From the NCBI RefSeq assembly GCF_000315625.1, contig NW_005434559.1:1-51061 (forward strand): DNA of 51,061 nucleotides, given 5' to 3'. Within the stretch, counting starts at the first letter, position 1. Every line of letters begins with the position of its first letter. This DNA is from Guillardia theta CCMP2712. Lineage: Eukaryota > Protista > Cryptophyta. Shown piece after piece: positions 1-28,818 of this stretch. Under the pieces are notes generated by a model that saw only the letters and a program-made list of their open reading frames with translations, was not told where the DNA came from and made no database searches. The translations under genes and the position numbers were made by a program.

Positions 1-217
1 ATCATGCATTTGAGCGCAACGTGCAACGCACTGCAATTTGAAAGAAGGGTCAATCAGAGTTGATTCTGTTCAATGGTGTATCCATTATTAGTTCCTTACC
101 TGTTCATAAAAATGTCATCATGTCTTCGAAGCATATTTGCAAGTACACTCGCGGATTGTATGAACCAAGGGCACATATTACATTACACGCTGGATGATTC
201 AAACCTTGGCCCAACCT
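1..217 (-). pseudogene. Degenerate copy (exon + intron) of the sequence at 40373-40576; runs off the left window edge
   Basis: Bases 1-204 align without gaps to 40373-40576 with about 20 mismatches by hand count. The minus frame reads FESSSV*CNMCPWFIQSASVLANMLRRHDDIFMN here and FESSIVYWNMHPWFKQSGSVLANILRRQDEIFMK in the other copy, so this copy has an in-frame stop. Both have a GTAAG donor. Confidence 0.6.
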
Positions 218-726
218 GCAGAGTTGAGAAAGAAGCTCGATCATCTCTTACAGATGTGATATGAGATCTTCATCTCATTTCTATCTCAGTTGGGTTGGAT
301 TCGAAGTCTCTCAATATCAAGGTTCATCCTCGCGAGTCAGGAAGGCACCATTTCATCGCCTCTTGCTCGTCCAGGGAGAGGGGGCTTGGGGAATGAGAAA
401 AGGGGGCTACCCCCCACCCCCTATTACGCAGTTTCAAATTCTTTCAAAGGTGGGTGGTTGAGGGTGCTCCATGCCTACCCCACCCCCCAACAACAGTCAA
501 ATGGAGGGGTTCTCGGAAGTCGAAGTTCCGACCAGTTTGGCCCTCATTTTGTACCATGTAAGAGCTGCAATTTTAAGTTGGTACCACAGATACTCCTAAA
601 ATGCGTACTTTTACATTGGTTTGGCGTGGTGAGGTGTCCACGCCACCAAATTCAAATCACCCTACCCCTCTTTGGCCCTGCACAGCAACGATTTTCATGA
701 GAGCGACTACCCTCCCACATGACTTC

Positions 727-3700
727 TCAAAGGAGGGTACTCCCAATTGGCATGGAATGAAGGGACCCCTCAGGTCCTTCGAAAAAAAAAAAATATTGCC
801 AATTTTTCCTATGAGCGCCCGGCCGGAAAAGCAACGCTATGGTGATCCGTCTTGGGGCCACGGTTGTGAACGACTTACATTTTGTGCAGTACGGGGTAAT
901 CCCTCCCCCTCCGATGGTCTCGTCGCTTGAGTCAGCCAAGGGGAGCATACATCCGATGTTTGAGCATTTTGAGCAGGTCCCTTGTTTCGTGCATGCGTTG
1001 ACGCTGAAGAAGAATCGTGTATGGTCCGCGTCCTCTAGCTCTCTAACCTTCTGCATTGGGAGATGATCCGTGAGATCACGGTATCCTGCTATCTCCCATG
1101 TTGTTTTATCCGATTCTTCTAGTGCTACAATTGCTTTCGTGATTGTGTTTGCAGGTAGCAGTGATAGAAAGATCCAGTCATCTGTCCCCTCTCGCTCGAT
1201 CCCAATCATCAGTTGCTGGTTTGCACTCCAAAATGCTCTAACGCCCCTCGTGTCTTCGCTAGATAGGGTTGCTTCGATTTGGTTGATGAGCTCGTCGGCA
1301 TTGTCGACTATCTTGCCGAGCAGTCGAAGAGCCAAGCCTTTGTGGCAACGAAGGGAGTTAGGGTGTTTTTTCTTGATGTCTTGACTTATCATCGGTTCTT
1401 TGGGAATGAAATCATTCTTGCGTCCCATTGCATTCTGGGATTCACGGCTGCCTACCGTGCCTAGCCGTGTTTGCTGCTGTTGGCAGATCTCTTGGAAAAC
1501 TTCGTTGTTTTGTTCTTCACATATCGTTCTGAACCTCTCGATCTTAGTTCGCAATTCTCTTTGTAATGTAGCTTCCGTAGGTACTCCAGTCGCTGGGCTT
1601 TGCTGTGATGCTTCCCTAAGTTTAGTCCGCAAGTTGCGGATCGATCTCTTCAAATCCATTTGTTCTTTGTTCGAATGTCGCCTTCCTCCCGTTCTGATTT
1701 TCACCTCCTTTAGTGGTAGAGAGTTGGCGAGCATCTCACAAATGTTACATTCTTGCGCCTTAGCTCGCATGTCTCGTATGTTTGCATCTAGTTGTTGCGC
1801 CCATTCGATCTTCTTCTCCTCCCACGAATCGCGATCCAGCACCCATCTGCTTTTAGGGGTTTCCCCCTTCTTCTGTCGTGAATTCATCTGGTGCACTTCT
1901 ACTCGTGGGATTAGCTGCGTCTCCTCGGACGTGAACTTGGTGTGTACTTGCACCACCAGGGCTCTGTGATCAACTGCTCCCCCTATCACACAGCCGTCGA
2001 CCGTCCACGATTGAAGGGAGATGTTTGGAAAGTTGTCCTCGTCACTTGGGGGGTGAATAGCGAGAACTGCGTCGAGTTTGGCTTCTATCAGTTCTTGTTT
2101 GTACCATGTTGAGAAGGTAAATGTTGTCCCAGTCTCGCTGATCTGTTCATATGAGAGTGTACGGTGTGCGGAAAGGTCTGCCAGGAATTTCTCGAATCTC
2201 TCATCTGCTTTTGCGGTGATAGATGAGGGGGAATATCCTCTCCGCATTGGTGTTGTTGTGTTGGTTCTTGCTGCATTAAAGTCTCCGGCTATGATGTGTG
2301 TCTCTCTCGTTCCCAGAGCGAGGTGTAGCAGCTCTGCCCACAGTTCCCCTTGCTCTCGAATCGCATTTTCCGCAGGTACCTGATGGAGGTTTGTGACTAA
2401 GAAAGAGTTTTTCCCTGTTCCGACTTTGATCGAAAACACTCGGTTTCGATATTTCTTTTCTTTGTTGCACGCCTGGTGAGCGGCAGGGGAGGGTGACGGC
2501 GACAGGGCCGCATGTACCAGCGTTACCAACCTCAGGTCTCCTTTCCCCTTCTTCGCATTGATCTTTGCAGGCCCCAGGAAGATTCTGTAGCAGGCCCAGT
2601 TCTCCTTGATCATCTTCCTTAATTTGTTCTCGTCGCGGGCCGAGACCCTTACCTCTTGTAGTAGCACAACCCCAGGTTGGAAGGACTGGATTAAGTATGC
2701 GAGGATGTGCTTGAGAACAAAGTGATTGCAACCATTCACATTTTGTGAGATGAGGAAACCTGGGTCTGAACTTTTTCGATGCATCTGCGCCCAATCATTG
2801 CCCCTTTGCTCCTCCTGCCTTTCCCCCCTCCGCTCCTTCCCTCTCTGGGAGGTTTTCTCTCCTGATTGTGCATTCTCCTCCATTTCCTCACCCAGATGTC
2901 TTGGTTGGGGCTTCGTGGAGGTCGCCTGCCGCTGGATTGCGATCGGCTGTACCTCCTCCTCAAGCTTTGTCGTCGAGGTCATCAGCCGCTGGATTGCGTG
3001 TGGCTGTACCTCCTCCTCAAGCTTTGTCGTCGAGGTCATCAGCCGCTGGATTGCGTGTGGCTGTACCTCCTCCTCAAGCTTTGTCGTCGAGGTCATCAGC
3101 CGCTGGATTGCGTTCGGCTGTACCTCCTCCTCAAGCTTTGTCGTCGATGTCAAGTTCTCTTGCACCCTCGCCTCCTTCGGCAGAGATCGCAGAATTACCT
3201 GGGCCGTTTCCTCCATCTTCTCCAGATGGGTGAGAGCTTCGATCAGTTGTGTTCTGGTTTGCATCAGCCATTCTTGCGGAGGTCTTAGTCTTGTCCTCGT
3301 TTCCATCGTTGCTAGCCAGTCTTGATTTGTCTCGCAGAGCAGTAGGGTGTGAAGGATAGCGAACACTCCGCAGTTGAAGTTATCTTCCTGTTGGAAGGCT
3401 GAGCACCACTTTACCTGCCATGGGGCGTTGGTCTGATCGTCAAAGATGTGTTCGATCACTCCGATTGTCAGCTCAGCCATTTCTCTTGCTCCGTGCTCCC
3501 CCGTTGTTGCAAGATTCCTCGCTCCCTCGATCCCTCGTGGGTCCCTCGTTGTGCTCGTTCTGTCCTCGCAGAGAGGGTCCAATATGTACGCGCATCGCCG
3601 ATCATATCTTAATGCAATTAGAATCCAGTGGTTGCTGTGGATGATAGTTGGAAACAGGAAGGTGTGTTGCTCATCTCTCAAGCTGCTGAGGTGAAATCTG

Positions 3701-4086
3701 TTCCCGACTCTCAAGCGGGACGCCTCGTCTCGCAGACTGGATATTACCCTTGGCAAGAAGATGATGTTCCGCGTTTGCTGGTCCTCGTGGGCTCTCCCTT
3801 TGCGTACCATGTGTATTGCTCGTCCTCCTTGAAGAGCCTTGCTCATCTCATTGAGAGTAACTTCGATCATGTTCTCGCATAAAAATCCGCTTACTCCTCG
3901 ATTGTTCAGGGCAGTGATGCCAAATTCCTTGTCGCCTCGTTTGTCTGACCATGGGATCTCCTCGATCCAATCAAAAAAATACAGTGTTCTATCTACATGT
4001 TGCGTTTCCTTTGAAACCGTTTCCATCTCCCCCCCTTGCCTACTCCCGGCACTCCCCCCTTCCTCCTCCCTTCCTCCTCCTGTCAT
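727..4086 (-). CDS. Retroelement-like polyprotein: Ulp1/C48 cysteine protease + 19-aa repeats + apurinic-like (EEP/APE) endonuclease + CxxC/CxxC Zn-ribbon; 3'-truncated, no RT seen
   Basis: Intronless 1119-aa ORF. The Ulp1 triad is seen in HSNHWILI (~3630), YILDPL and QQEDNFNCGVF (~3370). APE motifs occur in the correct order: SQNVNG (~2740), LLQEV, VTNLH, IIAGDFNA (~2280), TFTF, KLDAVL, VDHRAL (~1970). CSKC...CTKC lies near the C-terminus. Confidence 0.85.
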   Translation of the reverse strand: MTGGGREEEGGSAGSRQGGEMETVSKETQHVDRTLYFFDWIEEIPWSDKRGDKEFGITALNNRGVSGFLCENMIEVTLNEMSKALQGGRAIHMVRKGRAHEDQQTRNIIFLPRVISSLRDEASRLRVGNRFHLSSLRDEQHTFLFPTIIHSNHWILIALRYDRRCAYILDPLCEDRTSTTRDPRGIEGARNLATTGEHGAREMAELTIGVIEHIFDDQTNAPWQVKWCSAFQQEDNFNCGVFAILHTLLLCETNQDWLATMETRTRLRPPQEWLMQTRTQLIEALTHLEKMEETAQVILRSLPKEARVQENLTSTTKLEEEVQPNAIQRLMTSTTKLEEEVQPHAIQRLMTSTTKLEEEVQPHAIQRLMTSTTKLEEEVQPIAIQRQATSTKPQPRHLGEEMEENAQSGEKTSQRGKERRGERQEEQRGNDWAQMHRKSSDPGFLISQNVNGCNHFVLKHILAYLIQSFQPGVVLLQEVRVSARDENKLRKMIKENWACYRIFLGPAKINAKKGKGDLRLVTLVHAALSPSPSPAAHQACNKEKKYRNRVFSIKVGTGKNSFLVTNLHQVPAENAIREQGELWAELLHLALGTRETHIIAGDFNAARTNTTTPMRRGYSPSSITAKADERFEKFLADLSAHRTLSYEQISETGTTFTFSTWYKQELIEAKLDAVLAIHPPSDEDNFPNISLQSWTVDGCVIGGAVDHRALVVQVHTKFTSEETQLIPRVEVHQMNSRQKKGETPKSRWVLDRDSWEEKKIEWAQQLDANIRDMRAKAQECNICEMLANSLPLKEVKIRTGGRRHSNKEQMDLKRSIRNLRTKLREASQQSPATGVPTEATLQRELRTKIERFRTICEEQNNEVFQEICQQQQTRLGTVGSRESQNAMGRKNDFIPKEPMISQDIKKKHPNSLRCHKGLALRLLGKIVDNADELINQIEATLSSEDTRGVRAFWSANQQLMIGIEREGTDDWIFLSLLPANTITKAIVALEESDKTTWEIAGYRDLTDHLPMQKVRELEDADHTRFFFSVNACTKQGTCSKCSNIGCMLPLADSSDETIGGGGITPYCTKCKSFTTVAPRRITIALLFRPGAHRKNWQYFFFFEGPEGSLHSMPIGSTLL
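2915..3150. repeat. In-frame 57-bp tandem repeat (~4 copies) encoding TSTTKLEEEVQPHAIQRLM between the protease and the endonuclease
   Basis: Directly visible in the DNA and in the ORF translation. Confidence 0.95.
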
Positions 4087-4367
4087 GATTCGGTTTTAGA
4101 GTTGAGAGGCATCTCGGTTTTAGAGTTGAGAGGCATGATTCGGTTTTAGAGTTGAGAGGCAGTTTCGGTTTTAGAGTTGAGAGGCATGATTCGGTTTTAG
4201 AGTTGAGAGGCATGATTCGGTTTTAGAGTTGAGAGGCATGATTCGGTGTTAGAGTTGAGAGGCATGATTCGGTTTTAGAGTTGAGAGGCATGATTCGGTT
4301 TTAGAGTTGAGAGGCATGATTCGGTTTTAGAGTTGAGAGGCATGATTCGGTTTTAGAGTTGAGAGGC
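4084..4367. repeat. 26-bp tandem repeat CATGATTCGGTTTTAGAGTTGAGAGG, 11 copies
   Basis: Counted directly, with a few variant units. The leftmost unit's CAT is the start codon of the 1119-aa ORF. Confidence 0.95.
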
Positions 4368-4368
4368 A

Positions 4369-4440
4369 CTAAACCCTAAACCCTAAACCCTAAACCCTAA
4401 ACCCTAAACCCTAAACCCTAAACCCTAAACCCTAAACCCT
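4369..4440. repeat. Interstitial telomeric tract (CCCTAAA)~10
   Basis: Perfect plant-type telomere repeat; the G-rich strand is the minus strand. Confidence 0.97.
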
Positions 4441-6467
4441 GCTCAAGCTCAGCAGCTGCCGTTGCCCGTGGCGAGACCGCGCTGCCCCTCCTTGCCTTCT
4501 TGCTCTCTCCTTGCACGCGAGTCCAGCGCTTGCTCTGCAGCCACTTCCCCAGCTTCTCCTTGAGAACGTTGCGCCCAACTCCCTGCTCCTCTGGCATCTT
4601 CGCCCACTCTCCCAGCGACATGAACTCCAGGCTCCCCGGAGAGTAGAACGTGTCGTGGAGGTTGCCAACGGCCTTGTCCAGGACCAGCTTGATCGGCTCG
4701 CTCGTCCCCGCCTCGTTCAAAGAAGCTGCATCTTCGATGACTGCTGACAGCTCGCTGACGAGCTGCATGTCCTCTTGGCTTGACGGAGATGCTGCCTCCA
4801 TTGTGATCCTCTCCAGGTCTGTAAACTCCAGCCACTCTCCCTCGCTCTCCTCCTGTCGCTGCGCTGCGTCGCTGGTGCCCCGCTGACCAGCCGCCTCAGA
4901 GTCAGGCTCCTTGTCGAAGCCGACTGCTTCGAGCTTGGTTGCTGCGCCTTCGAGATAGAAGGGCAGCTCCTTCATCATGCGTCGAGCATCCTCCGTGGAG
5001 CCGAGGAGGATGCATAGCTTGGACCCGTTCCAGGACTTGGTGTTCAAATCCTCCTCCATGTCGATGCCTTCAACGTTGATCTCGAGCCTGTTAGCGATCT
5101 CCAACAAGACTCTCTTGACTCTTGCGATAGACGTGTTGCCGCCGTTGCACAGCCCCTCCATCTCCTTCCTCGTGAAGCGACCAGATGCCGCCGTCGACTT
5201 GATGATGATCTTGATCTCCTTGCCGTCCTTGCCGCCTGCCTTCTTCTGCAGTCTTGATGCCTTCTTCAACTTATTTCTGGACACAAAGCGATCCGCTGTC
5301 AACTCGACTGCGAGCGCCTCTCTGATCTTCGGGTCCTCGCTGAACAGAGTCAGGTGTACTCCCTCCATCGCTTCGCTCTCTCGGAAAGCTCGAAATGCTG
5401 TATCATTCGCCTCTGGGCAGCTCGAGGAGACGATCCACTCCACCTCCCTCTGTCTCCAGATGACGTTGGCCCCTACAGCGATGAAGCCTTTCTGACCTAA
5501 GCCTTTGTGGACTTGCTGTCCTGGCGCCCCAGCGACCAGCATGCCTGCCAGCGGCTGGAGCTGTACCGCTGCAAGGGACTGGCGCAGCAGCTGATAGCGA
5601 TAGACGGCAGCTATCTCAGCCGTTGTCATGCCGCCCAAGGTTAGCAGGTGAGTCAGCTCTGCCAAGCTGCCCCCTTTGCCCCAGGGTCCTCTCTTGGCTC
5701 GAATCTTGAAAGATCGATCGTGCACGATGCTCACATGTACAGCTGTGAACTTGCGACCATCGATCGCGAAGTCCTCTCTTCCCTGCCAGAGCTTCTCCGC
5801 TTGTGCATTGCGGAGGAAGGAAACAGTCACCGGGATCTCCTCAGCACTCGCTATCTCGGGTCTATACGGAGCCTTCCACATGATTGCTTTACTCTCTTGC
5901 ACTGAGTCTACGATCAGTCCGATCTCTTCAAATTTCTTCTTCAGCTTTTCTTCATACCGAGGAGATGCCCAGGAGAGTCATGGAGATGAAGGAAGTCACC
6001 TCGTTGCCTGCTGAGGCGGTGTATGTCTCGACCTTCTCTTTCTTGGCTTCTTCAATCTGCTGCATAAACCACTCTCTGGATGCGTCACTCCATCCAGCCA
6101 TCGCTTCTTGCAGAAGCTCACGTCGTGCCTGCTGACATGTCGAGCGGATGGCTTCTGCGATAGCGTCGGGGGTGCATCCCTCCACAACCTTGCAAGCCTG
6201 GGCTGTCCTGCTGTTCGGATAACGCTTCGCGAAGCTCTTCACCCTCTCGACGAGATCAGCTTCGAGGACAGAGGCATCCACAAGTCCGCTCTGCGTGTAT
6301 TGGCATGATCTCCGATACAGCAGGTTGCGAACATTTTCATCATACTGAGGAACCATACTTAGAAAGCTATTTGAAGTATACAAACCTCTTGCTTGCAGCT
6401 TCCTTGGCGCCCTGGCGGCTTCCCCTACACCTGACGAGGAGCCATGCTGCCGAAAATAACGGCGCCT
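4441..6467 (-). pseudogene. ORF1-like retroelement protein, copy A (two RRM-like segments); one frameshift; both ends cut by telomeric tracts
   Basis: ORFs 5952-6383 and 4418-5902 join through one frameshift near 5955-5975 (...SMTLLGIS / RYEEKLKKKFEEIGLIVDSVQ...). RRM-like patterns are LKKKFEEIGLIVDSV...VTVSF...A...IDGRKFTAV and IDMEEDLNTKSWNGSKLCILLGSTEDARR. The C-terminal GLGFRV is translated telomere repeat. Confidence 0.65.
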
Positions 6468-6545
6468 CCTAAACCCTAAACCCTAAACCCTAAACCCTAA
6501 ACCCTAAACCCTAAACCCTAAACCCTAAACCCTAAACCCTAAACC
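6468..6545. repeat. Interstitial telomeric tract (CCCTAAA)~11
   Basis: Perfect repeat. Confidence 0.97.
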
Positions 6546-7040
6546 AGGGATCTCGTGACCTGGCAGTTCGGCCCGACTTGGCTGGCCCCTATGGCAGCCT
6601 TGCTTCTGCTCTGCTCCCTTGTCTGATTATACTTCAGTGGTCTACCCCGGCGTCAGCCAGAGGAGTTTCCTCCGCTGGCCTTGGCCTGGGTCGTCCATGC
6701 TTTCAACTTGTGTTGCTTCCTCGGCTCCGACACACCTTGGCGGTCTCGGCCGGCCTTCGGCCAGTGAGTGAATGAAGGATAAGGTGGTAGGTGGAATGCG
6801 TATGGGTCTCTGGGACTCACGTCCCTTCCCCCGGGCCTCGGTCCGGACCGGGCCCGAGAGCCCGGCCGGCCTCCGCCCGGCCTCCTCCTCCCGGCCCCTC
6901 TCCCCCCTCCCCCACCGGCTTACCTGCCCTTACCTTCGTTGCTTGCCCCATGACCACCTGCTTTATTTCTTCCTCCTTCCCCCCTTTGGGCCCACAGCTC
7001 CGCTCCGCCTCTTGTCCACCTCTAAGACTTGCCTCGAGCC

Positions 7041-8332
7041 TCAAGCGCGAGAAAGGCCGGCGCCGGCCTCCTCCTCCACGCCCTCGCCCTCCTCAGCCTC
7101 CATGTCGACTTCCTCCCTCATCATCAGCCGCAGTCGGTCTTGCTTGTCGACCTTGCCCGTGCAGCTCAACCCATGGTGCTCAGCAAATTTACTGATCGCA
7201 AGAAACAAGAGGCTTACAGATCGACTCTCGATGTCATCGCTCTCGGCCTCCTGCTCGAGTGCATCAGTCGCTGCTGCCCTTGGAGAGAAGGCGCTGCCCC
7301 TCCTCGCTGCCTTGTTCCCTTGCACCCGTGTCCAGCGCTGCTCGCCGAGGTACGCTCTGAGCTTTTCTTTCAACATGTTTCGCTTCGATCCCAGCGTCGG
7401 CGTGGCTGCCCAAGCTCCGAGCGTCATGAACTCCACGTTGCCCGGCGAGCAGAAGGTGTCATGCAGCTTGCCAACACTCTTGTCTAGCTCCAGAGAGATC
7501 GGCTTGCCAGCTAGCAGCTCCTCCTCTGATGTCTCCAAGAGCATCGTCGAGAGGCCCGAGCAAGACCTGTTGATCGACTGGCCCTGACGGTGACGCTGCT
7601 TCCATGGTGATCCTGTCGATGTCGCTGAGCTTCAGCCATCCAGCCTCTTGCTGCTGCCCTTGGGGCTCTTGGGCTTGCTCCTCGCTGCTCGGGCTGCTCT
7701 CCTCCTCATGCTGAGGGTTGAGCTTAAAACTAGGGCCACCGCTTCGAGCTTGACTTCCAGGATCCCTTCCAAGTAGAAGGGCATGTCGTCCATCAAGCGT
7801 CGAGCACTCTGCCTTGGTCGCCAGGGAGAGAGCTATCAGGCTCCCATCCCAGCTGAGCGTGTCACGATCCTCCTCGACCTCGACGCTGACCAGCCTAAAC
7901 CCTAAACCCTAAACCCTAAACCCTAAACCCTTGGTCGGGAGAAACCCTAAACCATAAACCCGAAACCCTTAACCCGCGACTCTGAGCTCCATTCGCTCAG
8001 AGAGTCTTCAAACAGGTCGCGTCTCGCCTGCCGACATGTCGGTAGTGCATCCCCCCTCAGCTCTGCAAGCATGAGCTGTCCTACCGTACTACCAGGATAT
8101 CGCTTCGCGAAGCTCTTTATCATCTCGACGAGGTCGGCGGCCTCTTCGACGTGGCCTCCAGAGCGCACGCCCTGCGTGTATTGGCATGATCTCCGATACA
8201 GCAGGTTGCGAACGCTCTCATCATACTGTAGTACCATACTAAAAAAGCTTTTTGAACTATACCAGCACTTGCTCCGACTCGCAGCTTCCTCCGATCCCCT
8301 TGTGCTCCCCCTACGCGCCTTAGGATCTGCAT
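7041..8332 (-). pseudogene. ORF1-like retroelement protein, copy B; frameshifted, with a ~1 kb internal deletion filled by telomeric repeats
   Basis: Homologous to copy A: QYDESVRNLLYRRSCQYTQ vs QYDENVRNLLYRRSCQYTQ, MPFYLEG..KLEAV vs LPFYLEG..KLEAV, and LDKSVGKLHDTFCSPGNVEFMTLGAWA vs LDKAVGNLHDTFYSPGSLEFMSLGEWA. Confidence 0.8.
7894..7975. repeat. Interstitial telomeric tract: ~5 perfect CCCTAAA units, a 10-bp insert, then ~4-5 degenerate units
   Basis: 7894-7931 is perfect. 7942-7975 reads aaaccctaaaccataaacccgaaacccttaaccc. Confidence 0.92.
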
Positions 8333-8349
8333 CCTAAACCCTAAACCCC
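8333..8349. repeat. Short telomeric tract (~2.5 units) at the 5' boundary of ORF1 copy B
   Basis: cctaaaccctaaacccc. Confidence 0.8.
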
Positions 8350-8642
8350 AAGAGGATTTCATAGCTAAGAACTGTTGCTCTCTGCTCATCTTTCGCCTAT
8401 TCATCCGTCTGAAGGGGTTCCCTGGGAACCCTAGAACACATATTTAACTAGTTCATAAAATATTAATCATCGGTCCGCGGCATGACCAATGCTCAAAAGG
8501 TTTCTCAGGGAGCTCTCAGCATCGCTCTTGGCTTGATTTGCTTCAGCTCGGCATCTGCCTGGCATTGTCTTGAGTACAAGCAGAGGGCGGCTTGGAAGCG
8601 CTGCTGCTTGCGAATACGAGGGGAGGGGGCTCATTGACAAGT

Positions 8643-9164
8643 ATGCTCGATAAACGGTTTGCTCTGACAACAGTAGAACAAGAGATCATACGCGTAGAAG
8701 AAAAGATTAAGGAGGTAGACAGAGAGATTGGGAGAGTGGAAAAAGACATCTCAGCGTACAAGGCACGCAGTCCGATTACACAATGCCTGCTTTTCGAGCT
8801 TTTCTTTTGCAAGAAGGTGCAGTACGGGTTGAGCCTTACCTATCGGGGATCACCAGAGCCCACGCAAATGGATGGAATATCTAGTCATCACCTTCGATGC
8901 AAAGGGAGGCATACAACAACTTCCCAACCACAGAACTTGCTTGAGGCTCGTGAACCCCCAGCAAGGAGGCTACAACGCTTTCATATTAGAGCCTCACAGG
9001 ATGTCAGTAGAGTTTGTGCTGCTGACAAAGGCAAACGTCCATCCTTTCAAGCTGACTTTGTTTGCAGAGGCTCTCACTGGGCTTGGTATCCTTGCAGCTG
9101 GGTGGAAGGTGAGGGTAGTGTTCATGGTGCCGCGAGACTGAAAGGCTCTAGAGCTTTCGGATAG
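8643..9164 (+). pseudogene. Crinkler/RHS-like relic: short coiled coil followed by a frameshifted C-terminal restriction-endonuclease-like segment
   Basis: Coiled coil VEQEIIRVEEKIKEVDREIGRVEKDI, then LLFELFFC, then in another frame NPQQGGYNAFIL...VEFVLLTKANVHPFKL...VRVVFMVP. This resembles from memory the CRN C-terminal pattern NQGGYDA...VQVT...H.FK...FVVP. Confidence 0.4.
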
Positions 9165-11067
9165 GCAAAATCACGGGCTGCGGTGCGCTGGAGAAGTACG
9201 GATGGAAGCGAGGGCACGAAGAGAGGCAGGCAGAGGTAGCGGTCAAGGATGTCGCGTGAGCTCACCGGCGTTAGCAAGGGACAGCCGGGGAGGCGTGTGG
9301 CAGACGAGGCAAAGATCCGATCAGGAGCGGCGGCTCAGTCGCACAGGGGCTTGGGAAGATGATCAGCCTGATATCTACAAAAAATGACTAGCAGGGTAGT
9401 GTAGAGCTTGAAAGGCAACCTACTTGATATGATGAATCCTCTGGTCATAATTTCGAAGTCCTTCGTTCATACTAACTGTCTCATTCTTCAGCAAAGGTGA
9501 TTGTATGTGTGAAGAGCCAGTTTCAAACACTTTGCAGCAGCATGAAGGAACACTTTATTCGGTTGCTTGCCCATATCTTTGAAGAAAATGCAACGACTTC
9601 AAAACCAATATATCAGCGAGACTTTCACGATTGTTCAAGTTGCTAAAGTTGGAGTCACATGACGCTCGCCGACAACGTTGACTGTTCGAGCTTTCACATA
9701 GGGCTATCCCTCTGCCTGCTGATGAAATATGCAGAACACGTTGCCTGCCAAGGGATTGGATTCAAACTTCACCATGTCGAGTCATCAAATTTTGCATCGT
9801 TGCCTTATATCCACTGCATGCTCCATGATGTCAATCGCAGTCGGGGAGGCTCCGTGAGAGACGCTGCTTGCGTCGGGCAGTGCCGCCGACTCGGTCTTCT
9901 ACGGCCGGTTTTGGCACAAATCATACTTTAGTATAGTTTTGTATTTTGAAATCTGTAACCTTTTTCTGGACACATCAAAGAGCTTTGGATTTGCTTCTGT
10001 TTTTCTCACCGTGCTTTCTATGTCTATTCTCACAAGAAATTGTTCTATTACTCTATCTATCCTTACAAAACATTGACTACTTGGTAGGATTCTCCATGAA
10101 AAACTAAACAAACTATATGAGGTTTCAGATCTTGCTCACATCAACATGGTAGGCATTTCCTTCAACAATGAGCTATACCTTGCATGCTGCAGAATGTCAT
10201 TCCTGACTACCTATACATAGAAGTCAAGTAAGCTTGCCATAAGCTCTAAATGAACCAAATGTCTTGAAACACAATCGCCTTGGTTAAGCTCCATCTCTTC
10301 GCTCCTTCTATTCTCTCGCAAGTTTGCCCATGTCCTCGTATGCCCTCACGCTCGCCATCGCTCTGGGGAAAAAATTATAAGTGTTTTAACAAAAGGGCCA
10401 AAGAACCCCTAAATTACAACTTTACAGGACTTACGGAGGGCAACAATTCCAAACGATGTGGTTTGAGCCGCCACTCCGCCCCCTTCTCTTCCCCCATCGA
10501 TCAGAGGCAGCAGAGGGCTCGGGAGAAACTCGTCGCGCCGTGATGCACGAGAGGCAACAATTCGAGGAGATGTGAGTCCAGCCTCCTTCCGCCTCCTTCG
10601 GACTCTCAGGGCCTTCTAACCACCACCGCCGCCGGCGGGCTGGGCCTCGCCGCGCCTGTGATCGGACTCCGGGCCGGCATTTCAAGTTTTGTACGGTCAA
10701 TGAGGGTCTCTTCAACTTAACTTTGAGTAAAAAGAGGGTGCTTTTGCAATCGGATTCGAACTTCGAGAAGCCTGAGGTACCATTTTCCTTTACTCAAAGT
10801 ACCCGTACGCTGGACCCGCGGCCCGGGCCCCGGGGCCCCCGCCGGGGCGGGCGGCCGGATCCGGCGATGATCTTTTTGCTTAGTTGGCGTACTAATTTTT
10901 AACTTAATTAAATTTGAGTAAAGAAGTCGGGCTAGTACAGGGTGACTGAGCCCCGGGCCCCGGCACACTACTGAAGCATCGGAATGACAGGAGCGGTCAA
11001 GTAGACTGCGGCGGTCAAGTGGGGAGGTGAAGAAACAGCGGCGTGATAAACTTCATCGCCTCTCGCA

Positions 11068-16978: not shown

Positions 16979-19900
16979 TCATGGCATCCGCATGGGGAAG
17001 AAGACGTTCTGAGGGTAGATGGCCTGCGAGAGATTAAGCAACGAGTGATAGTACAAGAATGCCAGCAGTCATAGAGGAGGAGATTAAGCAACGAGTGATA
17101 GTAGAAGAATGCCAGCAGTCATAGAGGAGGAGATTAAGCAACGAGTGATAGTACAAGAATGCCAGCAGTCATAGAGGAGGAGATTAAGCAACGAGTGATA
17201 GTACAAGAATGCCAGCAGTCATAGAGGAGGAGATTAAGCAACGAGTGATAGTACAAGAATGCCAGCAGACATAGAGGAGGAGATTAAGCAACGAGTGATA
17301 GTACAAGAATGCCAGCAGTCATAGAGGAGGAGATTAAGCAACGAGTGATAGTACAAGAATGCCAGCAGTCATAGAGGAGGAGATTAAGCAACGAGTGATA
17401 GTACAAGAATGCCAGCAGTCATAGAGGAGAGGATTAAGCAACGAGTGATAGTACAAGAATGCCAGCAGTCATAGAGGAGGAGATTAAGCAACGAGTGATA
17501 GTACAAGAATGCCAGCAGTCATAGAGGAGGAGATTAAGCAACGAGTGATAGTACAAGAATGCCAGCAGACATAGAGGAGGAGATTAAGCAACGAGTGATA
17601 GTACAAGAATGCCAGCAGTCATAGAGGAGGAGATTAAGCAACGAGTGATAGTAGAAGAATGCCAGCAGTCATAGAGGAGGAGATTAAGCAACGAGTGATA
17701 GTACAAGAATGCCAGCAGTCATAGAGGAGGAGATTAAGCAACGAGTGATAGTACAAGAATGCCAGCAGTCATAGAGGAGGAGATTAAGCAACGAGTGATA
17801 GTACAAGAATGCCAGCAGTCATAGAGGAGGAGATTAAGCAACGAGTGATAGTAGAAGAATGCCAGCAGTCATAGAGGAGGAGATTAAGCAACGAGTGATA
17901 GTAGAAGAATGCCAGCAGACATAGAGAAGGAGGAGAGATTTCCAAGGAGAAAATGAAGCGCGAACAAGGAGAACTACACATGAGCCCACAAGTTCTTCAC
18001 CTGCTGGTTCCAGGAGGCGTTGGACGCAAAGGGCTGCATGGCCATCGGGTAGGACATGGCGAAGTCCGGGGGCTGCAGGAAGGGCAGACCGAAGTTGATC
18101 ATGCCAGGGTAGAGCTGCTCGGGGGGGGGAGGAAGCGGAGAGACGAGCGACTGCGATGTGATCAGGCAAACAAGAAGGCAGGAGGAAGGCAAATGAGAAA
18201 CACAGCAGCATGGCGGAAGGGGGGGGGGAAGGAGGAGGAGGAGGAGGAGGAGGAGGAGGAGGTTACCGCGGTGTACTGTTCCTTCAACAATGTCTGAACG
18301 ATCATCATGCTTGACATCTGCATGGTCGTCACGCCCCACAAAGATGAAGGTGATATGCAAGAAGATCGACAGCTCGACGACAACCATGCAAGGCAGGGAA
18401 GGGGAAGGCAGCTAAACGATCAGAGGAGGAGAGAGCATGGGAGGAGGAAGTGCAGAACGGAAGAGGTGGAGGAGGTGGTGGTGGTGGTCGTAGAGGAGGA
18501 GGACCTGTGCGCTTCTCAAAGAATTGAACTTGAGCTGATTCTTCTCAAGAAACGCAACGAGATCGTCTCGGTTTGTGCATCTGCTGTCACTTGAGTCGAT
18601 CAAACTTCAGCTCTCGCCCAGCTCACAGTGAGGACACGAAGGGTGCGTCGTCCTCAATCATGACACAGACAGGTCTGCCGGGGTCCTGCTGGATGTTAAA
18701 GATGCAAAGAATAGCATTGAAGAGAGGACGTAGGAGGCCAGGGACGAAAGGCACAGAGACGAAAACAGCGAGGAGAAGAGGAGAAGAGGAGAAGAGGAGA
18801 AGGGAATCAGAAAGCAGAGGAGGAGTCAGAAAGGAGAGGAGGAGTCAGAAAGCAGAGGAGGAGTCAGAAAGGAGAGGAGGAGTCAGAAAGGAGAGGAGGA
18901 GTCAGAAAGCAGAGGAGGAGTCAGAAAGGAGAGGAGGAGTCAGAAAGCAGAGGAGGAGTCAGAAAGCAGAGGAGGAGTCAGAAAGCAGAGGAGGAGTCAG
19001 AAAGCAGAGGAGGAGTCAGAAAGGAGAGGAGGAGTCAGAAAGGAGAGGAGGAGTCATGCTGCTTGCCTGAAGCGAGGCGCTGAAGATGGTAGAGATGTCG
19101 ACGAGGGAACTGCTTAGAGCCGCCTCCTTCATCCTCCCAGAGTCGTCATAGGGTGAGAGGTCGGCGATCTGAAGACCTGAAAGAAGGGAATGAAACATTG
19201 TCGCAAGGAGATGAGAGAGGAAGATGAAGTCAACGCAGCAGTGAAGTAGCAAAGGGAGACATTGAAGTAGCAAAGGGAGGCATGGGGAAGTAGGAGGGAG
19301 CAAGAGTCAGGTGAAAGAAGCCAGAACGCAACAAGGAGGGACAAAGGAGGAGGAGGAGGGAGGTGACAGGAAGGAGGGAAGGGCGAGGCAGAAGGTGAGA
19401 GCAAGAAGACGAGGAGGAGGAGGAGGAGAGGGGAGAGATCGAGGAATATGAAAGCAGCATCTACTTGTCCGCCGTTGTTGCTACTCGATGCGCCATCAGA
19501 ATCTCCGTTCCTGCTCTCAGTGTCACTCCCTTGCTGTCGAGCTCACAGGACCCGACATGCTCCCTCCATTGCCGTCGTCGCCGCTCCCACTACAAGCCTT
19601 GTCAGAAAAAAGTTGCTCAATAGGGCAAGAGAAGATCGAGAGAGAAGCAAGAGTGAAACGGAGAAGGGAAGAGAGCGCAAACTGAAGAGAAGGAAAGAGG
19701 AAAGAGGACAGCAGAACAGGATAGCAGATGAAGTGTAGTGGAGGAGAAGCATGCAGGTCTATCACGAACCTGCTTGGTGAGTTTGAGGAATTTGAGTTCC
19801 CATTGGTGGAGTCTGTTTGAACAACATGAGAGAAGATGTAACGCGGAACACAAAACAAGTGATGAGTTTGCTTGCCTGTTCCTGAATCTCGCAGAGAATC

Positions 19901-25999: not shown

Positions 26000-28818
26000 A
26001 TGCTCCGAGGAGTCTCTCGGAATGTTGCAAGGCGAACGTTCTTCAATGCAGCATATGGTTTAGCTAAGAAGGTCATGCCTAAGATATCAGAGACGGAGGC
26101 TGCTGCATTGAACTCCGGAAGCGTCAGCTTTGATGGCGAACTTTTCAAGGGCGACACATCAAGCAAGCATCTGCTAGAAAAGTATAGCCTGAAGCTGACG
26201 CCCGAAGAAGAGGCATTTTTGAAGAATGAGACTGAACAGCTGTGTGAGATGCTGAACAATCATCAGATCGATGTCGATCAGAACCTTCCTCCGAATGTTT
26301 GGCAGTTTATACGCGAGAAACGATTCATGGGTATGATCATTCCAAAGAAGTATGGTGGTCTGGGTTTCAGTGGCCATGGGCATGCTCTCGTAGTTGAAAA
26401 GATTGCCGGACGCAACGGGGCAGCAGCTGTGACCGTCATGGTCCCTAACTCACTCGGTCCTGGTGAACTCTTGTATCATTACGGAACAGAAGAGCAGAAG
26501 AACCACTACTTGCCTCGCCTCGCCAATGGAATTGACATTCCATGCTTTGGCCTGACGGGAGCACCCAATGGTTCGGATGCAGCAGGATCTATGGTCGACG
26601 AGGGGGTAGTTGTGATGGAGGATGGAGTATTGGGAATGAGAGTTAACTTCTCCAAACGGTACATCACTCTCGCGCCTGTCGCTACCTTGGTTGGTCTCGC
26701 CTTTAAGCTGAAGGACCCATCAAAGCTGCTCACCAAAGGAAAGGAGGGCATTACAGTAGCTCTGCTTCCTACTTCTCCGAATCAGTTCGCTCCCAGTGGT
26801 ATTCAAGGCCTGAAGACAGGAAATCGCCATGACCCGCTGGGAACGCCTTTCATGAACGGAACAGTGCAAGGCCAGAACGTTTTCATACCCATGTCATGCA
26901 TTATTGGCGGAGAAGAGCGAGCAGGTTTACAACCTTGATGATAGTCGTTGATTAGTCTGATTCGTAAATTCCAGGTTACGGGTGGAACATGCTTGTTGAG
27001 TGTCTTGGTGAAGGACGAGGAATTTCGCTCCCAGCAGGCTCGATAGCTGGAATGAAACTCTCTACTCTTGCCGTAAGTTTAAAATTTCTTTGCACGAATC
27101 TCATGCACTTTGTCAGGTTGGAGGGTATGCCCGCATCCGCAAACAATTCAAAGTTCCCATTGCCGACATGGAAGGTGTCCAGGAGAAGCTTGCCGTGATC
27201 GCGAGAAACAGTTATCAATCTATCGCTGCTCAGCATCTCTTCAACGCTATCCTAGCGACAGGTCAGAAACCACCTGTGCTCTCAGCTATCATGAAGCAGC
27301 AATGCACCGAGAAAGGAAGGGAGTCAATCAACGAGGCCATGGACATCATCGGTGGTGCTGGTATCATCAAAGGTCCCTCCAACTACCTGGCGAGTGGCTA
27401 TCAAGCGATTCCTATCGGCATCACCGTAGAGGGAGCCAACACGCTCACGCGCTCACTGATCATCTTCGGTCAAGGACTGAATCGCTCGCACCCTCATCTC
27501 CTCGACCTCATCCAGACCATCCAGAAGGGCAACGACTTGCAAGGCTTCAACCGCGAGCTCACGCTGGTCTTCAAGCACGCTTTCACCAACTTGGGGCGAT
27601 CCGTGTCTCGAGGATTGTCTGTGCAGCTTCAGCCCAAGGGGGGGAACATTGTTGGTTACCATGAAGCACAGGTGAGCTTGTTATTGTTATCTGATTCTCG
27701 CATAGCTTGTCATTGTTATCTGAATACTCGCATAGCTTGTCATTGTTATCTGAATACTCGCATAGCTTGTCATTGTTATCTGAATACTCGCATAGCTTGT
27801 CATTGTTATCTGAATACTCGCATAGCTTGTCATTGTTATCTGATTCTCGCATAGCTTGTCATTGTTATCTGAATACTCGCATAGCTTGTCATTGTTATCT
27901 GAATACTCGCATAGCTTGTCATTGTTATCTGAATACTCGCATAGCTTGTCATTGTTATCTGAATGCTCACTTGGTTGTCATCACCATCCTAACACTTATT
28001 GTGCTCAGTTGCACCGATTGACTGCCTGCTTTGCGTTCTTGTCCGATGTTGGAATGATACTGGGAGGAGGCCTCAAGACTGCTGAGTTTGTGTCTGGCCG
28101 ATACGCTGATATCTTGGGAAACCTCTACATTGGATACGCTTGCCTCTGGTTCTACCAGAATAATCGCAACGTCAAGGATTTGGCAGTGTTGTTGGACTAC
28201 GCGATGGCAGACGTTTGTCACAAGATTCAGGAGTCTATGTTTGGTCTGTTTGACAATTTTCCCGTTCCTCTCGTTGGTCTTGGTATGAGGTTGGTCACTT
28301 TCCCTCGAGGAAGAGAGTATTTTGTCGCGAAGGATTCGCTACGAAAGAAAGTGTCAAACCTCATCACCACTCCGACAGAGGTGCAGCCCTGAAACGCTCG
28401 TCGGGTGCTTTGAGCTTGACAGACGTGCAGGTCCGAAGCCTCATGACAGAGAATGTCTTCATCTCCAAGAGCCCAGGAGATCGAGTTCATCAGATCGCAC
28501 ACGCTTTCAACATCTGCATCTCTGCTGACGAGATCGCTCGAACTATCCGGCGTGAGAAGCGAGAGGTACGACAAGGAGCTCAAGTCCTCATGCTCACGCG
28601 CACCGACAGGCGACTGCCGAGGAATCAAAGGTGCTGGCCGAGGCAGACAAGCTGCGAGACGAGATCATTCAGGTTGGTCACGATCGTGACTTGAGCGCAA
28701 CTGACGTCTGGCTCAGGTCGACACCTTCGAGACTCTAGCAGGGAAGGACCATCGCGGTCAGTTCATGACTCCCACTTGGTCTGTGTCGGAGACCAAACAC
28801 GAGAAGAGCGCCATGTGA
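26000..28818 (+). CDS. fadE: Acyl-CoA dehydrogenase, FadE-type (with DUF1974-like C-terminus), about 7-8 exons; final exon uncertain
   Basis: Motifs MPKISETEAAALNSG, TVMVPNSLGPGELLYHYGTEEQK, IPCFGLT..GSDA, KRYITLAPVATLVGLAF, GWNMLVECLGEGRGISLP, RIRKQF, IPIGITVEGANTLTRSLIIFGQG and SGRYADILGNLY. GT-AG introns at 26925-26974, 27073-27116, 27672-28008 and further downstream. Confidence 0.92.
27690..27967. repeat. 30-bp intronic minisatellite TCTGAATACTCGCATAGCTTGTCATTGTTA, ~9 copies
   Basis: Lies inside the intron at 27672-28008. Confidence 0.95.

Follow-up and report, generated by a model that had tools for sequence, protein, structure and literature searches.

Near one contig end of the cryptophyte alga Guillardia theta CCMP2712, tracts of the telomere repeat (TTTAGGG)n alternate with pieces of retrotransposons that lack long terminal repeats (non-LTR retrotransposons, or long interspersed nuclear elements, LINEs). 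The stretch analyzed here, referred to as the window, comprises the first 51 kb of its contig (NW_005434559.1; 51,061 nucleotides; C115:1-51061). The array is probably explained by site-specific insertion of these elements into telomere repeats, combined with telomerase healing of elements that had eroded at the chromosome end. An original prediction, made from the sequence alone, had taken the tracts for scars that telomerase wrote at breaks inside retroelement open reading frames (ORFs), with G-rich seeds at one tract end and a template stop at the other. The retroelement-telomerase interplay that it proposed was largely right, and the tie of the tracts to one retroelement group is tight; its account of how the tracts end is revised below.

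Four perfect tracts (T1 to T4) and one degenerate tract of a single polarity are present as predicted. The plus strand of all five reads CCCTAAA, the minus strand being the G strand, and a CCCTAAA-type 14-mer matched the window 25 times against 0.01 matches expected by chance. The tracts map 4.4-8.3 kb from the contig end in native left-telomere orientation. Genome-wide searches, which covered 87.1 Mb in 669 contigs, returned 2142 matches to a 21-mer of the telomere repeat, on the plus strand near left contig ends and on the minus strand near right ends; the matches are often grouped as several tracts within a few kilobases, and perfect terminal repeats are present in the genome. The contig end at the window start is a subtelomere. 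Interstitial telomeric sequences left by fusion or repair are expected at internal sites, head to head or in either orientation, whereas all tracts here lie within 8.4 kb of the contig start and in terminal orientation.

The long ORFs of the tract region are all on the minus strand, so that the sense strand of the elements is the G strand and their 3' ends point toward the chromosome end. The same orientation was found in every segment, both in the window and at 21 sampled contig ends, where flanking sequence was compared; the genome-wide figures given below are pattern counts only. The outermost copy (segment 1; see Table 1) contains an ORF at 727-4086 (minus strand) that matched Exo_endo_phos, an APE-type endonuclease domain (E 1.9e-8). 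Roughly a dozen copies with open frames of ~2500 amino acids (aa), nearly all near contig ends, match residues 1-1082 of this ORF2 at 96-100% identity, and the ~50 ORF2 matches lie mostly less than 20 kb from contig ends, pointing outward at both kinds of end. A copy on contig C7 (96% identical to the window ORF2) carries RVT_1 at residues 1147-1307 in addition to Exo_endo_phos. The autonomous element therefore encodes an endonuclease and a reverse transcriptase (RT), the window copy itself being cut off before the RT. Segments 2 to 4 derive from two families of ORF1-only elements. An intact copy of the main family has a single frame of ~743 aa with no RT. The protein encoded there shares 35% identity with the autonomous element's ORF1 (E 2e-43).

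Intact elements end in a (TAA)n or (TAC)n tail that is joined to the repeat as TA/GGG (slashes mark junctions throughout). The tail junction TAATAATA/GGGTTTAGGG had 100 matches genome-wide, against 0 for the other phase tested, TAATAA/GGGTTTAGGG. The elements lie inside telomere repeats, in one orientation and with a fixed tail-repeat 3' junction, as is characteristic of telomere-repeat-specific non-LTR retrotransposons. The invariant tail junction fits target-primed reverse transcription from a C-strand nick ending in ...CCCTA-3'.

At the other boundary, a tract ends on the G strand and the next element begins. We counted the seven possible G-strand end registers of all tracts of at least 15 nt in the genome (n = 692). 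TTTAGG/ was found 273 times, TTTAG/ 140 times and TTTAGGG/ 98 times, and GGGTT/ (66), GGGTTT/ (53), TTTA/ (32) and GGGT/ (30) together made up the remaining 181. The end registers are thus non-random, as had been predicted, with 60% falling in two of the seven, TTTAG(G) (chi-square p 7e-94). In the window, the chance of all four perfect tracts ending in the TTTAG/ or TTTAGG/ register is ~0.007. The claim that the four share one end register holds within one ambiguous G; on a longest-match reading, however, three end in TTTAGG/ (6468, 7894 and 8333) and one in TTTAG/ (4369).

What follows these ends points to their origin. Directly beyond nearly all TTTAG(G) ends at the 21 contig ends lie a few sequences that recur (such as AGGCGCCGTTATTTTCGG, AGCGCCGGTTATTTC, AGGATCCCTTTATCT and AGACCGCTGGAG), and these are the natural 5' termini of element families. 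Several of these families begin with tandem 19-20-mers, and the boundaries between units within these arrays place the element start at AG and hence the tract end at TTTAGG; the dominant end, TTTAGG/AG, lies one base past an Arabidopsis-type telomerase stop. At 5'-truncated copies the registers are more varied, with 0-3 nt of microhomology. Varied registers with short microhomology are usual at LINE 5' junctions. Because the register co-occurs with the elements' own 5' termini at the 21 contig ends, the most plausible reading of the constant tract end is that it marks where the 5' end of a site-specifically inserted element joins the repeat, and not a telomerase stop. The template boundary of the original prediction is therefore not upheld: the register goes with element 5' termini, is dominated by TTTAGG/AG and loosens at 5'-truncated copies. 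The distal sides of the tracts, which had been described as breakpoints inside ORFs, are likewise mostly element starts. Positions 6467 and 8332 coincide with, or lie close to, the natural 5' ends of elements, and 4368 is ~25 nt upstream of the ORF2 start codon.

On this basis we propose that the non-LTR retrotransposons repeatedly invade telomerase-made (TTTAGGG)n, which would be their only target, with the sense strand on the G strand and the 3' end outward. The element endonuclease would nick the C strand, and the resulting ...CCCTA-3' would pair with the UA of the (UAA)n or (UAC)n tail and prime cDNA synthesis; the G strand would then be cut after TTTAGG, sometimes after TTTAG. Such a reaction would leave the fixed junctions TTTAGG/AG... 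at the element 5' end and tail-TA/GGGTTT at the 3' end, and a C-strand nick combined with a G-strand cut after TTTAG(G) would give a target duplication of 3-4 bp. Insertion would take place into duplex repeats, because a G-overhang cannot prime cDNA that becomes the sense strand, whereas a nicked C strand can. The RT-less ORF1-homologue elements would use the same site, presumably borrowing the enzyme of the autonomous element. We also considered an antisense-RNA model, in which the G-overhang primes on an antisense transcript, which would explain 3' truncations; it was set aside since the intact tail junctions fit C-strand priming and 5'-truncated copies exist.

The tract starts behave differently. 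Genome-wide, the start registers are /TAGGG (185, canonical tails included), /AGGG (141), /GGG (104), /TTAGGG (95), /TTTAGGG (77), /GG (75) and /G (54), which is more spread than the end registers, and their distribution is non-uniform (p 1e-22). No tract start in the window adjoins a tail. Instead, the four tract-bordered copies are cut short, with ~635 nt lost at 4441, 87 nt at 6546, most of the element at 7977 and 38 nt at 8349. Placing the breaks inside ORFs was correct for 4441, 7893 and 7977, which fall in ORF1, but not for 6546 and 8349, which fall in 3' untranslated regions (UTRs). Compared with intact copies, the element's own bases at the break that match the repeat are AGG (4441), G (6546) and none (7977), with one non-matching G at 8349. 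Since the elements supply just 0-3 nt, most of the GG or GGG seeds that had been seen in the flanks are added telomeric repeat, even though the flank strings themselves had been quoted correctly.

At the 21 contig ends, more than half of the tract-bordered copies are truncated. The 11 truncation junctions obtained there share 0-3 nt with the repeat, with at least 1 nt in 10 of the 11 (p 5e-5 versus chance); in six, the shared bases begin at the A of TTTAGGG (A, AG or AGG), and only three fit the canonical primer end. Both window junctions that were tested (4441 and 6546) are unique in the genome. Repeats that start directly at a truncated end with short pairing are a feature of de novo telomere addition, albeit one not exclusive to telomerase. 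In the scheme we propose, loss of the short terminal tract would expose the outward-facing 3' part of an element, and erosion or breakage followed by telomerase addition would yield a 3'-truncated copy that runs straight into new repeats. The new tract would be the next insertion target, and repetition of the cycle would stack former chromosome ends with the oldest innermost.

Erosion followed by telomerase healing is, in our judgment, the probable origin of the 3' truncations. It is favored by start registers unlike the invariant insertion junction, by the lack of a hot spot, by the high proportion of truncated copies, by a telomerase gene candidate and by an age gradient described below. Telomerase_RBD had a single match in the genome, above the curated cut-off, at G000:C21:562211-562372 (minus strand; E 8e-12), with one in-frame TAG inside, and this match is likely the TERT gene. 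Anchoring at A, AG or AGG would be expected of a template whose alignment region ends in ...CCU-3'; in Arabidopsis, the telomerase RNA carries the template CUAAACCCU (PMC11406999). Thus, of the proposal that the tracts were written by telomerase, we retain that they are genuine telomerase-type repeats and prefer, for their starts, the capping of broken or eroded elements; their end register is explained otherwise.

Several points weigh against this combined reading. The nick sites, CCCTA^AA and TTTAGG^G, are deduced from junction sequences, and the tract-element junctions are in turn taken from the assembly. The register counts take in some variant repeats within tracts, the microhomology set consists of just 11 junctions from the 21 contig ends, and the end register could owe something to a telomerase stop at TTTAG. 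Pure erosion does not easily account for several very short fragments truncated on both sides, such as the 10-nt filler (7932-7941) and pieces of 73-141 nt at other ends. In addition, internal initiation of target-primed reverse transcription by SART1Bm at a telomere-like AGG gives very similar junctions (PMC7265360).

The last two points bear on an alternative in which the truncated copies were never full length, the nicked C strand having paired with a short telomere-like stretch within the element RNA and primed reverse transcription there; the distal tract would then be old, and the insertion model would stand unchanged. When its poly(A) is short or absent, SART1Bm initiates at an AGG that lies 394 nt upstream, inside the element (PMC7265360), bases in common with the repeat (1-3 nt) occur at 10 of the 11 truncation junctions, and the very short fragments are easier to understand as abortive cDNAs. 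However, the invariant canonical junction (100 versus 0) implies a ...CCCTA-3' primer, which fits only three of the 11 truncated junctions, six more being one base short. Truncation of over half of the copies would be an unusually high failure rate, the uniqueness of the two tested window junctions leaves no hot spot of the SART1 kind, and the gradient from old inner to young outer pieces fits sequential end growth. We therefore regard internal initiation as an unlikely, though serious, source of the truncations.

A second alternative is that telomerase alone wrote both tract ends, starting on a G-rich seed at the break and stopping at a template boundary in ...TTTAG, after which an element was joined to the physical end. 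The strongly non-random end registers are in its favor, and a template such as that of Arabidopsis would give ...TTTAG ends and align A, AG or AGG seeds, as at six of the 11 junctions. Yet a G-strand 3' end cannot prime the element sense strand from mRNA, and the observed orientation calls for priming from the C strand, and hence for a nick in duplex repeats. Moreover, TTTAGG/AG dominates over TTTAG/ (273 versus 140), the register is tied to full-length 5' termini and looser at 5'-truncated copies, and the elements encode an endonuclease of their own. These arguments make the telomerase-only account very improbable.

Broken elements might also have been joined to a more distal tract by microhomology or unequal exchange, with neither telomerase nor RT acting at the junction. 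Microhomologies of 0-3 nt are typical of such joining, and tracts are plentiful nearby, but random registers would be expected, whereas six of the 11 junctions begin at the A of TTTAGGG and the genome-wide starts depart from uniformity; we consider end joining or recombination extremely unlikely. That the tracts are false assembly joins between repeat-rich reads can hardly be credited, even though the contig ends inside the array and many contigs stop in such arrays, because most of the 21 sampled contig ends show the same architecture, with precise junctions that are found repeatedly (the tail junction, for instance, in 100 identical cases), and the window copies differ in family and divergence.

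The relatives of the individual pieces give the array its time axis (Table 1). Segment 2 is 97-98% identical to at least six copies of a 2.66-2.9 kb element, and its reading frame is broken near 5902-5952. Segment 3 has at least 12 copies at 94-96% and is 96% identical to L031 3605-4662, which continues to a (TAC)n tail at 3518. Segment 4 is the most diverged piece (82-83% to other copies; 83% to C1:5085-5455); a complete RT-less copy of its family on C1 measures ~1.96 kb and has a (TAC)n tail. We rejected the idea that segments 4 and 3 are a single interrupted copy, since their identities to one and the same reference differ (83% and 96%, respectively) and ~135 nt are missing between their ends. 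The innermost piece was aligned to L031 on C1, whose copy goes on to a (TAA)n tail, and over 15 subtelomeric loci match its part at 8349-8422 at 86-92%. The boundary of this piece, at which the array ends inward, is blurred: 74-97 bases on the proximal side of the last tract belong to it. Inner pieces are thus 82-92% identical to their best relatives and outer ones ~96-99% in DNA, with ORF2 protein identity of up to 100%. None of the five window copies retains its tail, four of them running into telomere repeats and the outermost into unrelated DNA, and segments 3 and 1 are 5'-truncated as well. The window array resembles a series of earlier chromosome ends piled on one another, the older copies lying toward the interior and the younger toward the contig end; the fossil ends of the original prediction were largely right. 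The unrelated DNA at 1-841 could be an insertion, a rearrangement or an assembly join, and the filler beside T3 may be an abortive mini-insertion.

Table 1. Tracts, element segments and adjoining features at the start of the window, listed from the contig end inward.
Feature	Position	Strand	Description
Unrelated sequence	1-841	.	replaces the remainder of the autonomous element to the contig start; no telomeric repeat
Segment 1, autonomous non-LTR ORF2	842-4086	-	Ulp1-like N-terminus and APE endonuclease; homology ends at residue 1082, before the RT
Tandem array, 26-mer	4084-4368	-	period 26, 11.1 copies; unit is the first 26 nt of the 5'-truncated autonomous copy
Tract T1	4369-4440 (72 nt)	minus-strand reading	perfect repeat, ends TTTAG/
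Segment 2, ORF1-only element, main family	4441-6467	-	canonical 5' end AGGCGCCGTTATTTTCGG; 3' end cut inside ORF1, last ~635 nt missing
Tract T2	6468-6545 (78 nt)	minus-strand reading	perfect repeat, ends TTTAGG/
Segment 3, ORF1-only element, second family	6546-7893	-	5' end cut in ORF1; 3' end 87 nt short of the (TAC)n tail
Tract T3	7894-7931 (38 nt)	minus-strand reading	perfect repeat, ends TTTAGG/
Filler, 10 nt	7932-7941		non-telomeric; between degenerate and perfect (T3) repeats
Degenerate tract	7942-7976	minus-strand reading	old repeats TTAAGGG, TTTCGGG, TTTATGG, TTTAGGG
Segment 4, ORF1-only element, second family	7977-8332	-	first 356 nt; starts ~24 nt inside the 5' end of the C1 copy; 3' end cut off
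Tract T4	8333-8348 (16 nt)	minus-strand reading	perfect TTTAGGG repeat, ends TTTAGG/ at the next element's 5' end
3' UTR fragment of yet another element	8349-8445	-	~38 nt short of the (TAA)n tail of the intact copy; runs into T4

The elements also vary at their 5' ends. Full-length families begin with 19-20-mer arrays of 1 to ~30 units. The unit of the 26-mer array in the window is single-copy in the intact element L037, just before the ORF2 start codon (compare L037 6130-6160 and 8300-8510), and a genome-wide pattern search found its unit-to-unit junction confined to the window locus. The TG at the start of the unit equals the two bases that follow it in the native sequence. These arrays are consistent with the reverse transcriptase having copied the 5' end of the RNA several times over, and they seem to be made anew at insertion and not inherited.

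Other observations concern the elements and their surroundings. A main-family copy, L035 (C5:1-2357), begins with 580 nt made up of ~30 units of the 19-mer, whereas the window copy at 6467 has a single unit. ORF2 contains, upstream of its APE domain, a Ulp1/C48-like cysteine-protease motif, for which Pfam gave only a weak C48 match, and only in the related copy on C11. A 57-bp repeat of 4.2 units at 2913-3152 encodes a 19-aa repeat between the Ulp1-like and APE domains. For a second, restriction-like endonuclease, a trait of the Dualen group, inspection by eye of the post-RT region of the C11 copy showed no clear motif, no full-length ORF2 having been examined. The 10-nt filler has an 8-nt motif in common with an element-internal site in the related element L048. 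Farther inward, a dispersed repeat at 8749-9428, unrelated to the telomeric elements, has more than 10 copies in both orientations (79-84% identity), many of them on contig C84, and tandem arrays lie at 17030-17932 (50-bp unit, 18 copies, 98% identity) and 27675-27968 (30-bp unit, 10 copies). Contig C124 had been suggested as an allelic contig by a 15-mer at C124:8335-8349, at identical coordinates; this was dropped as a coincidence, the proximal 5.6 kb having no match on C124.

A bolder reading can be offered tentatively. The chromosome ends of this alga might be kept by an obligatory two-enzyme cycle, in which LINEs insert with their 3' ends outward, telomerase re-caps the eroded elements and each cap is the next target, while the element RT would act in a telomerase-like manner at the RNA 5' end, re-copying the last 19-26 nt into 5' arrays. 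Telomerase-like re-copying is suggested because a 5'-truncated copy carries a private 26-mer array of 11 units. Since the elements face outward, the array would keep a readable record of end loss, telomerase repair and re-invasion. In a culturable alga, this would open to study the seed choice of telomerase in vivo and the sharing of a substrate by site-specific LINEs and telomerase. For annotation, the apparently interstitial telomere tracts are better treated as subtelomeric insertion scars than as fusion points or assembly errors. To our knowledge, telomere-targeted retrotransposons alongside an active telomerase occur in only a few lineages.

Telomere-specific LINEs are known in insects, Giardia, Chlorella and fungi (see, for example, PMC4640811, PMC4700185), and LINE/Dualen repeats have been listed in cryptophytes with telomeres unmentioned (PMC12747079). 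Our literature search found no published report of telomere retrotransposons in cryptophytes, Guillardia included. SART1 and TRAS1 of Bombyx mori resemble the present elements in combining an APE-type endonuclease with an RT and in occupying one repeat position in one orientation, and SART1 shares their orientation, with the sense strand on the G strand. SART1Bm cleaves the silkworm telomere repeat at one fixed site (TT/AGG), SART and TRAS insert in opposite orientations, and SART1 needs a few repeats as a target and can start internally at AGG (PMC7265360). Unlike SART1, the present elements have TTTAGGG as host repeat and a cryptophyte as host, (TAA)n or (TAC)n tails instead of poly(A), a Ulp1-like ORF2 N-terminus, abundant RT-less ORF1-only relatives and variable 5' tandem arrays. 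Many copies here are also 3'-truncated and repeat-capped, whereas Bombyx telomeres are reported with full-length elements only (PMC4700185).

The HeT-A, TART and TAHRE elements of Drosophila likewise form head-to-tail terminal arrays and pair an enzyme-coding element with a Gag-only partner; however, they do so with no telomerase or telomeric repeats, by attachment to free ends with the 3' end inward, so that erosion truncates their 5' ends. The MoTeR elements of Magnaporthe oryzae, which Starnes et al. are said to have described in 2012, are reportedly telomere-targeted in a telomerase-positive host, with truncated copies that are repeat-capped and arrays that cause end instability. They share telomere targeting and capped truncations with the elements described here but face the opposite way: their 5' ends reportedly point outward and are capped, and they are said to use a restriction-like endonuclease and to carry variant telomere repeats at the 5' end. 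Finally, de novo telomere addition resembles what we observed in that perfect repeats start where non-telomeric DNA is broken, 0-3 nt being paired, and often in the register in which the template would align. Unlike in usual de novo addition, the ends that appear to have been healed in this alga, as judged from their sequence, are those of telomere-targeted elements, and each tract would be the next target.

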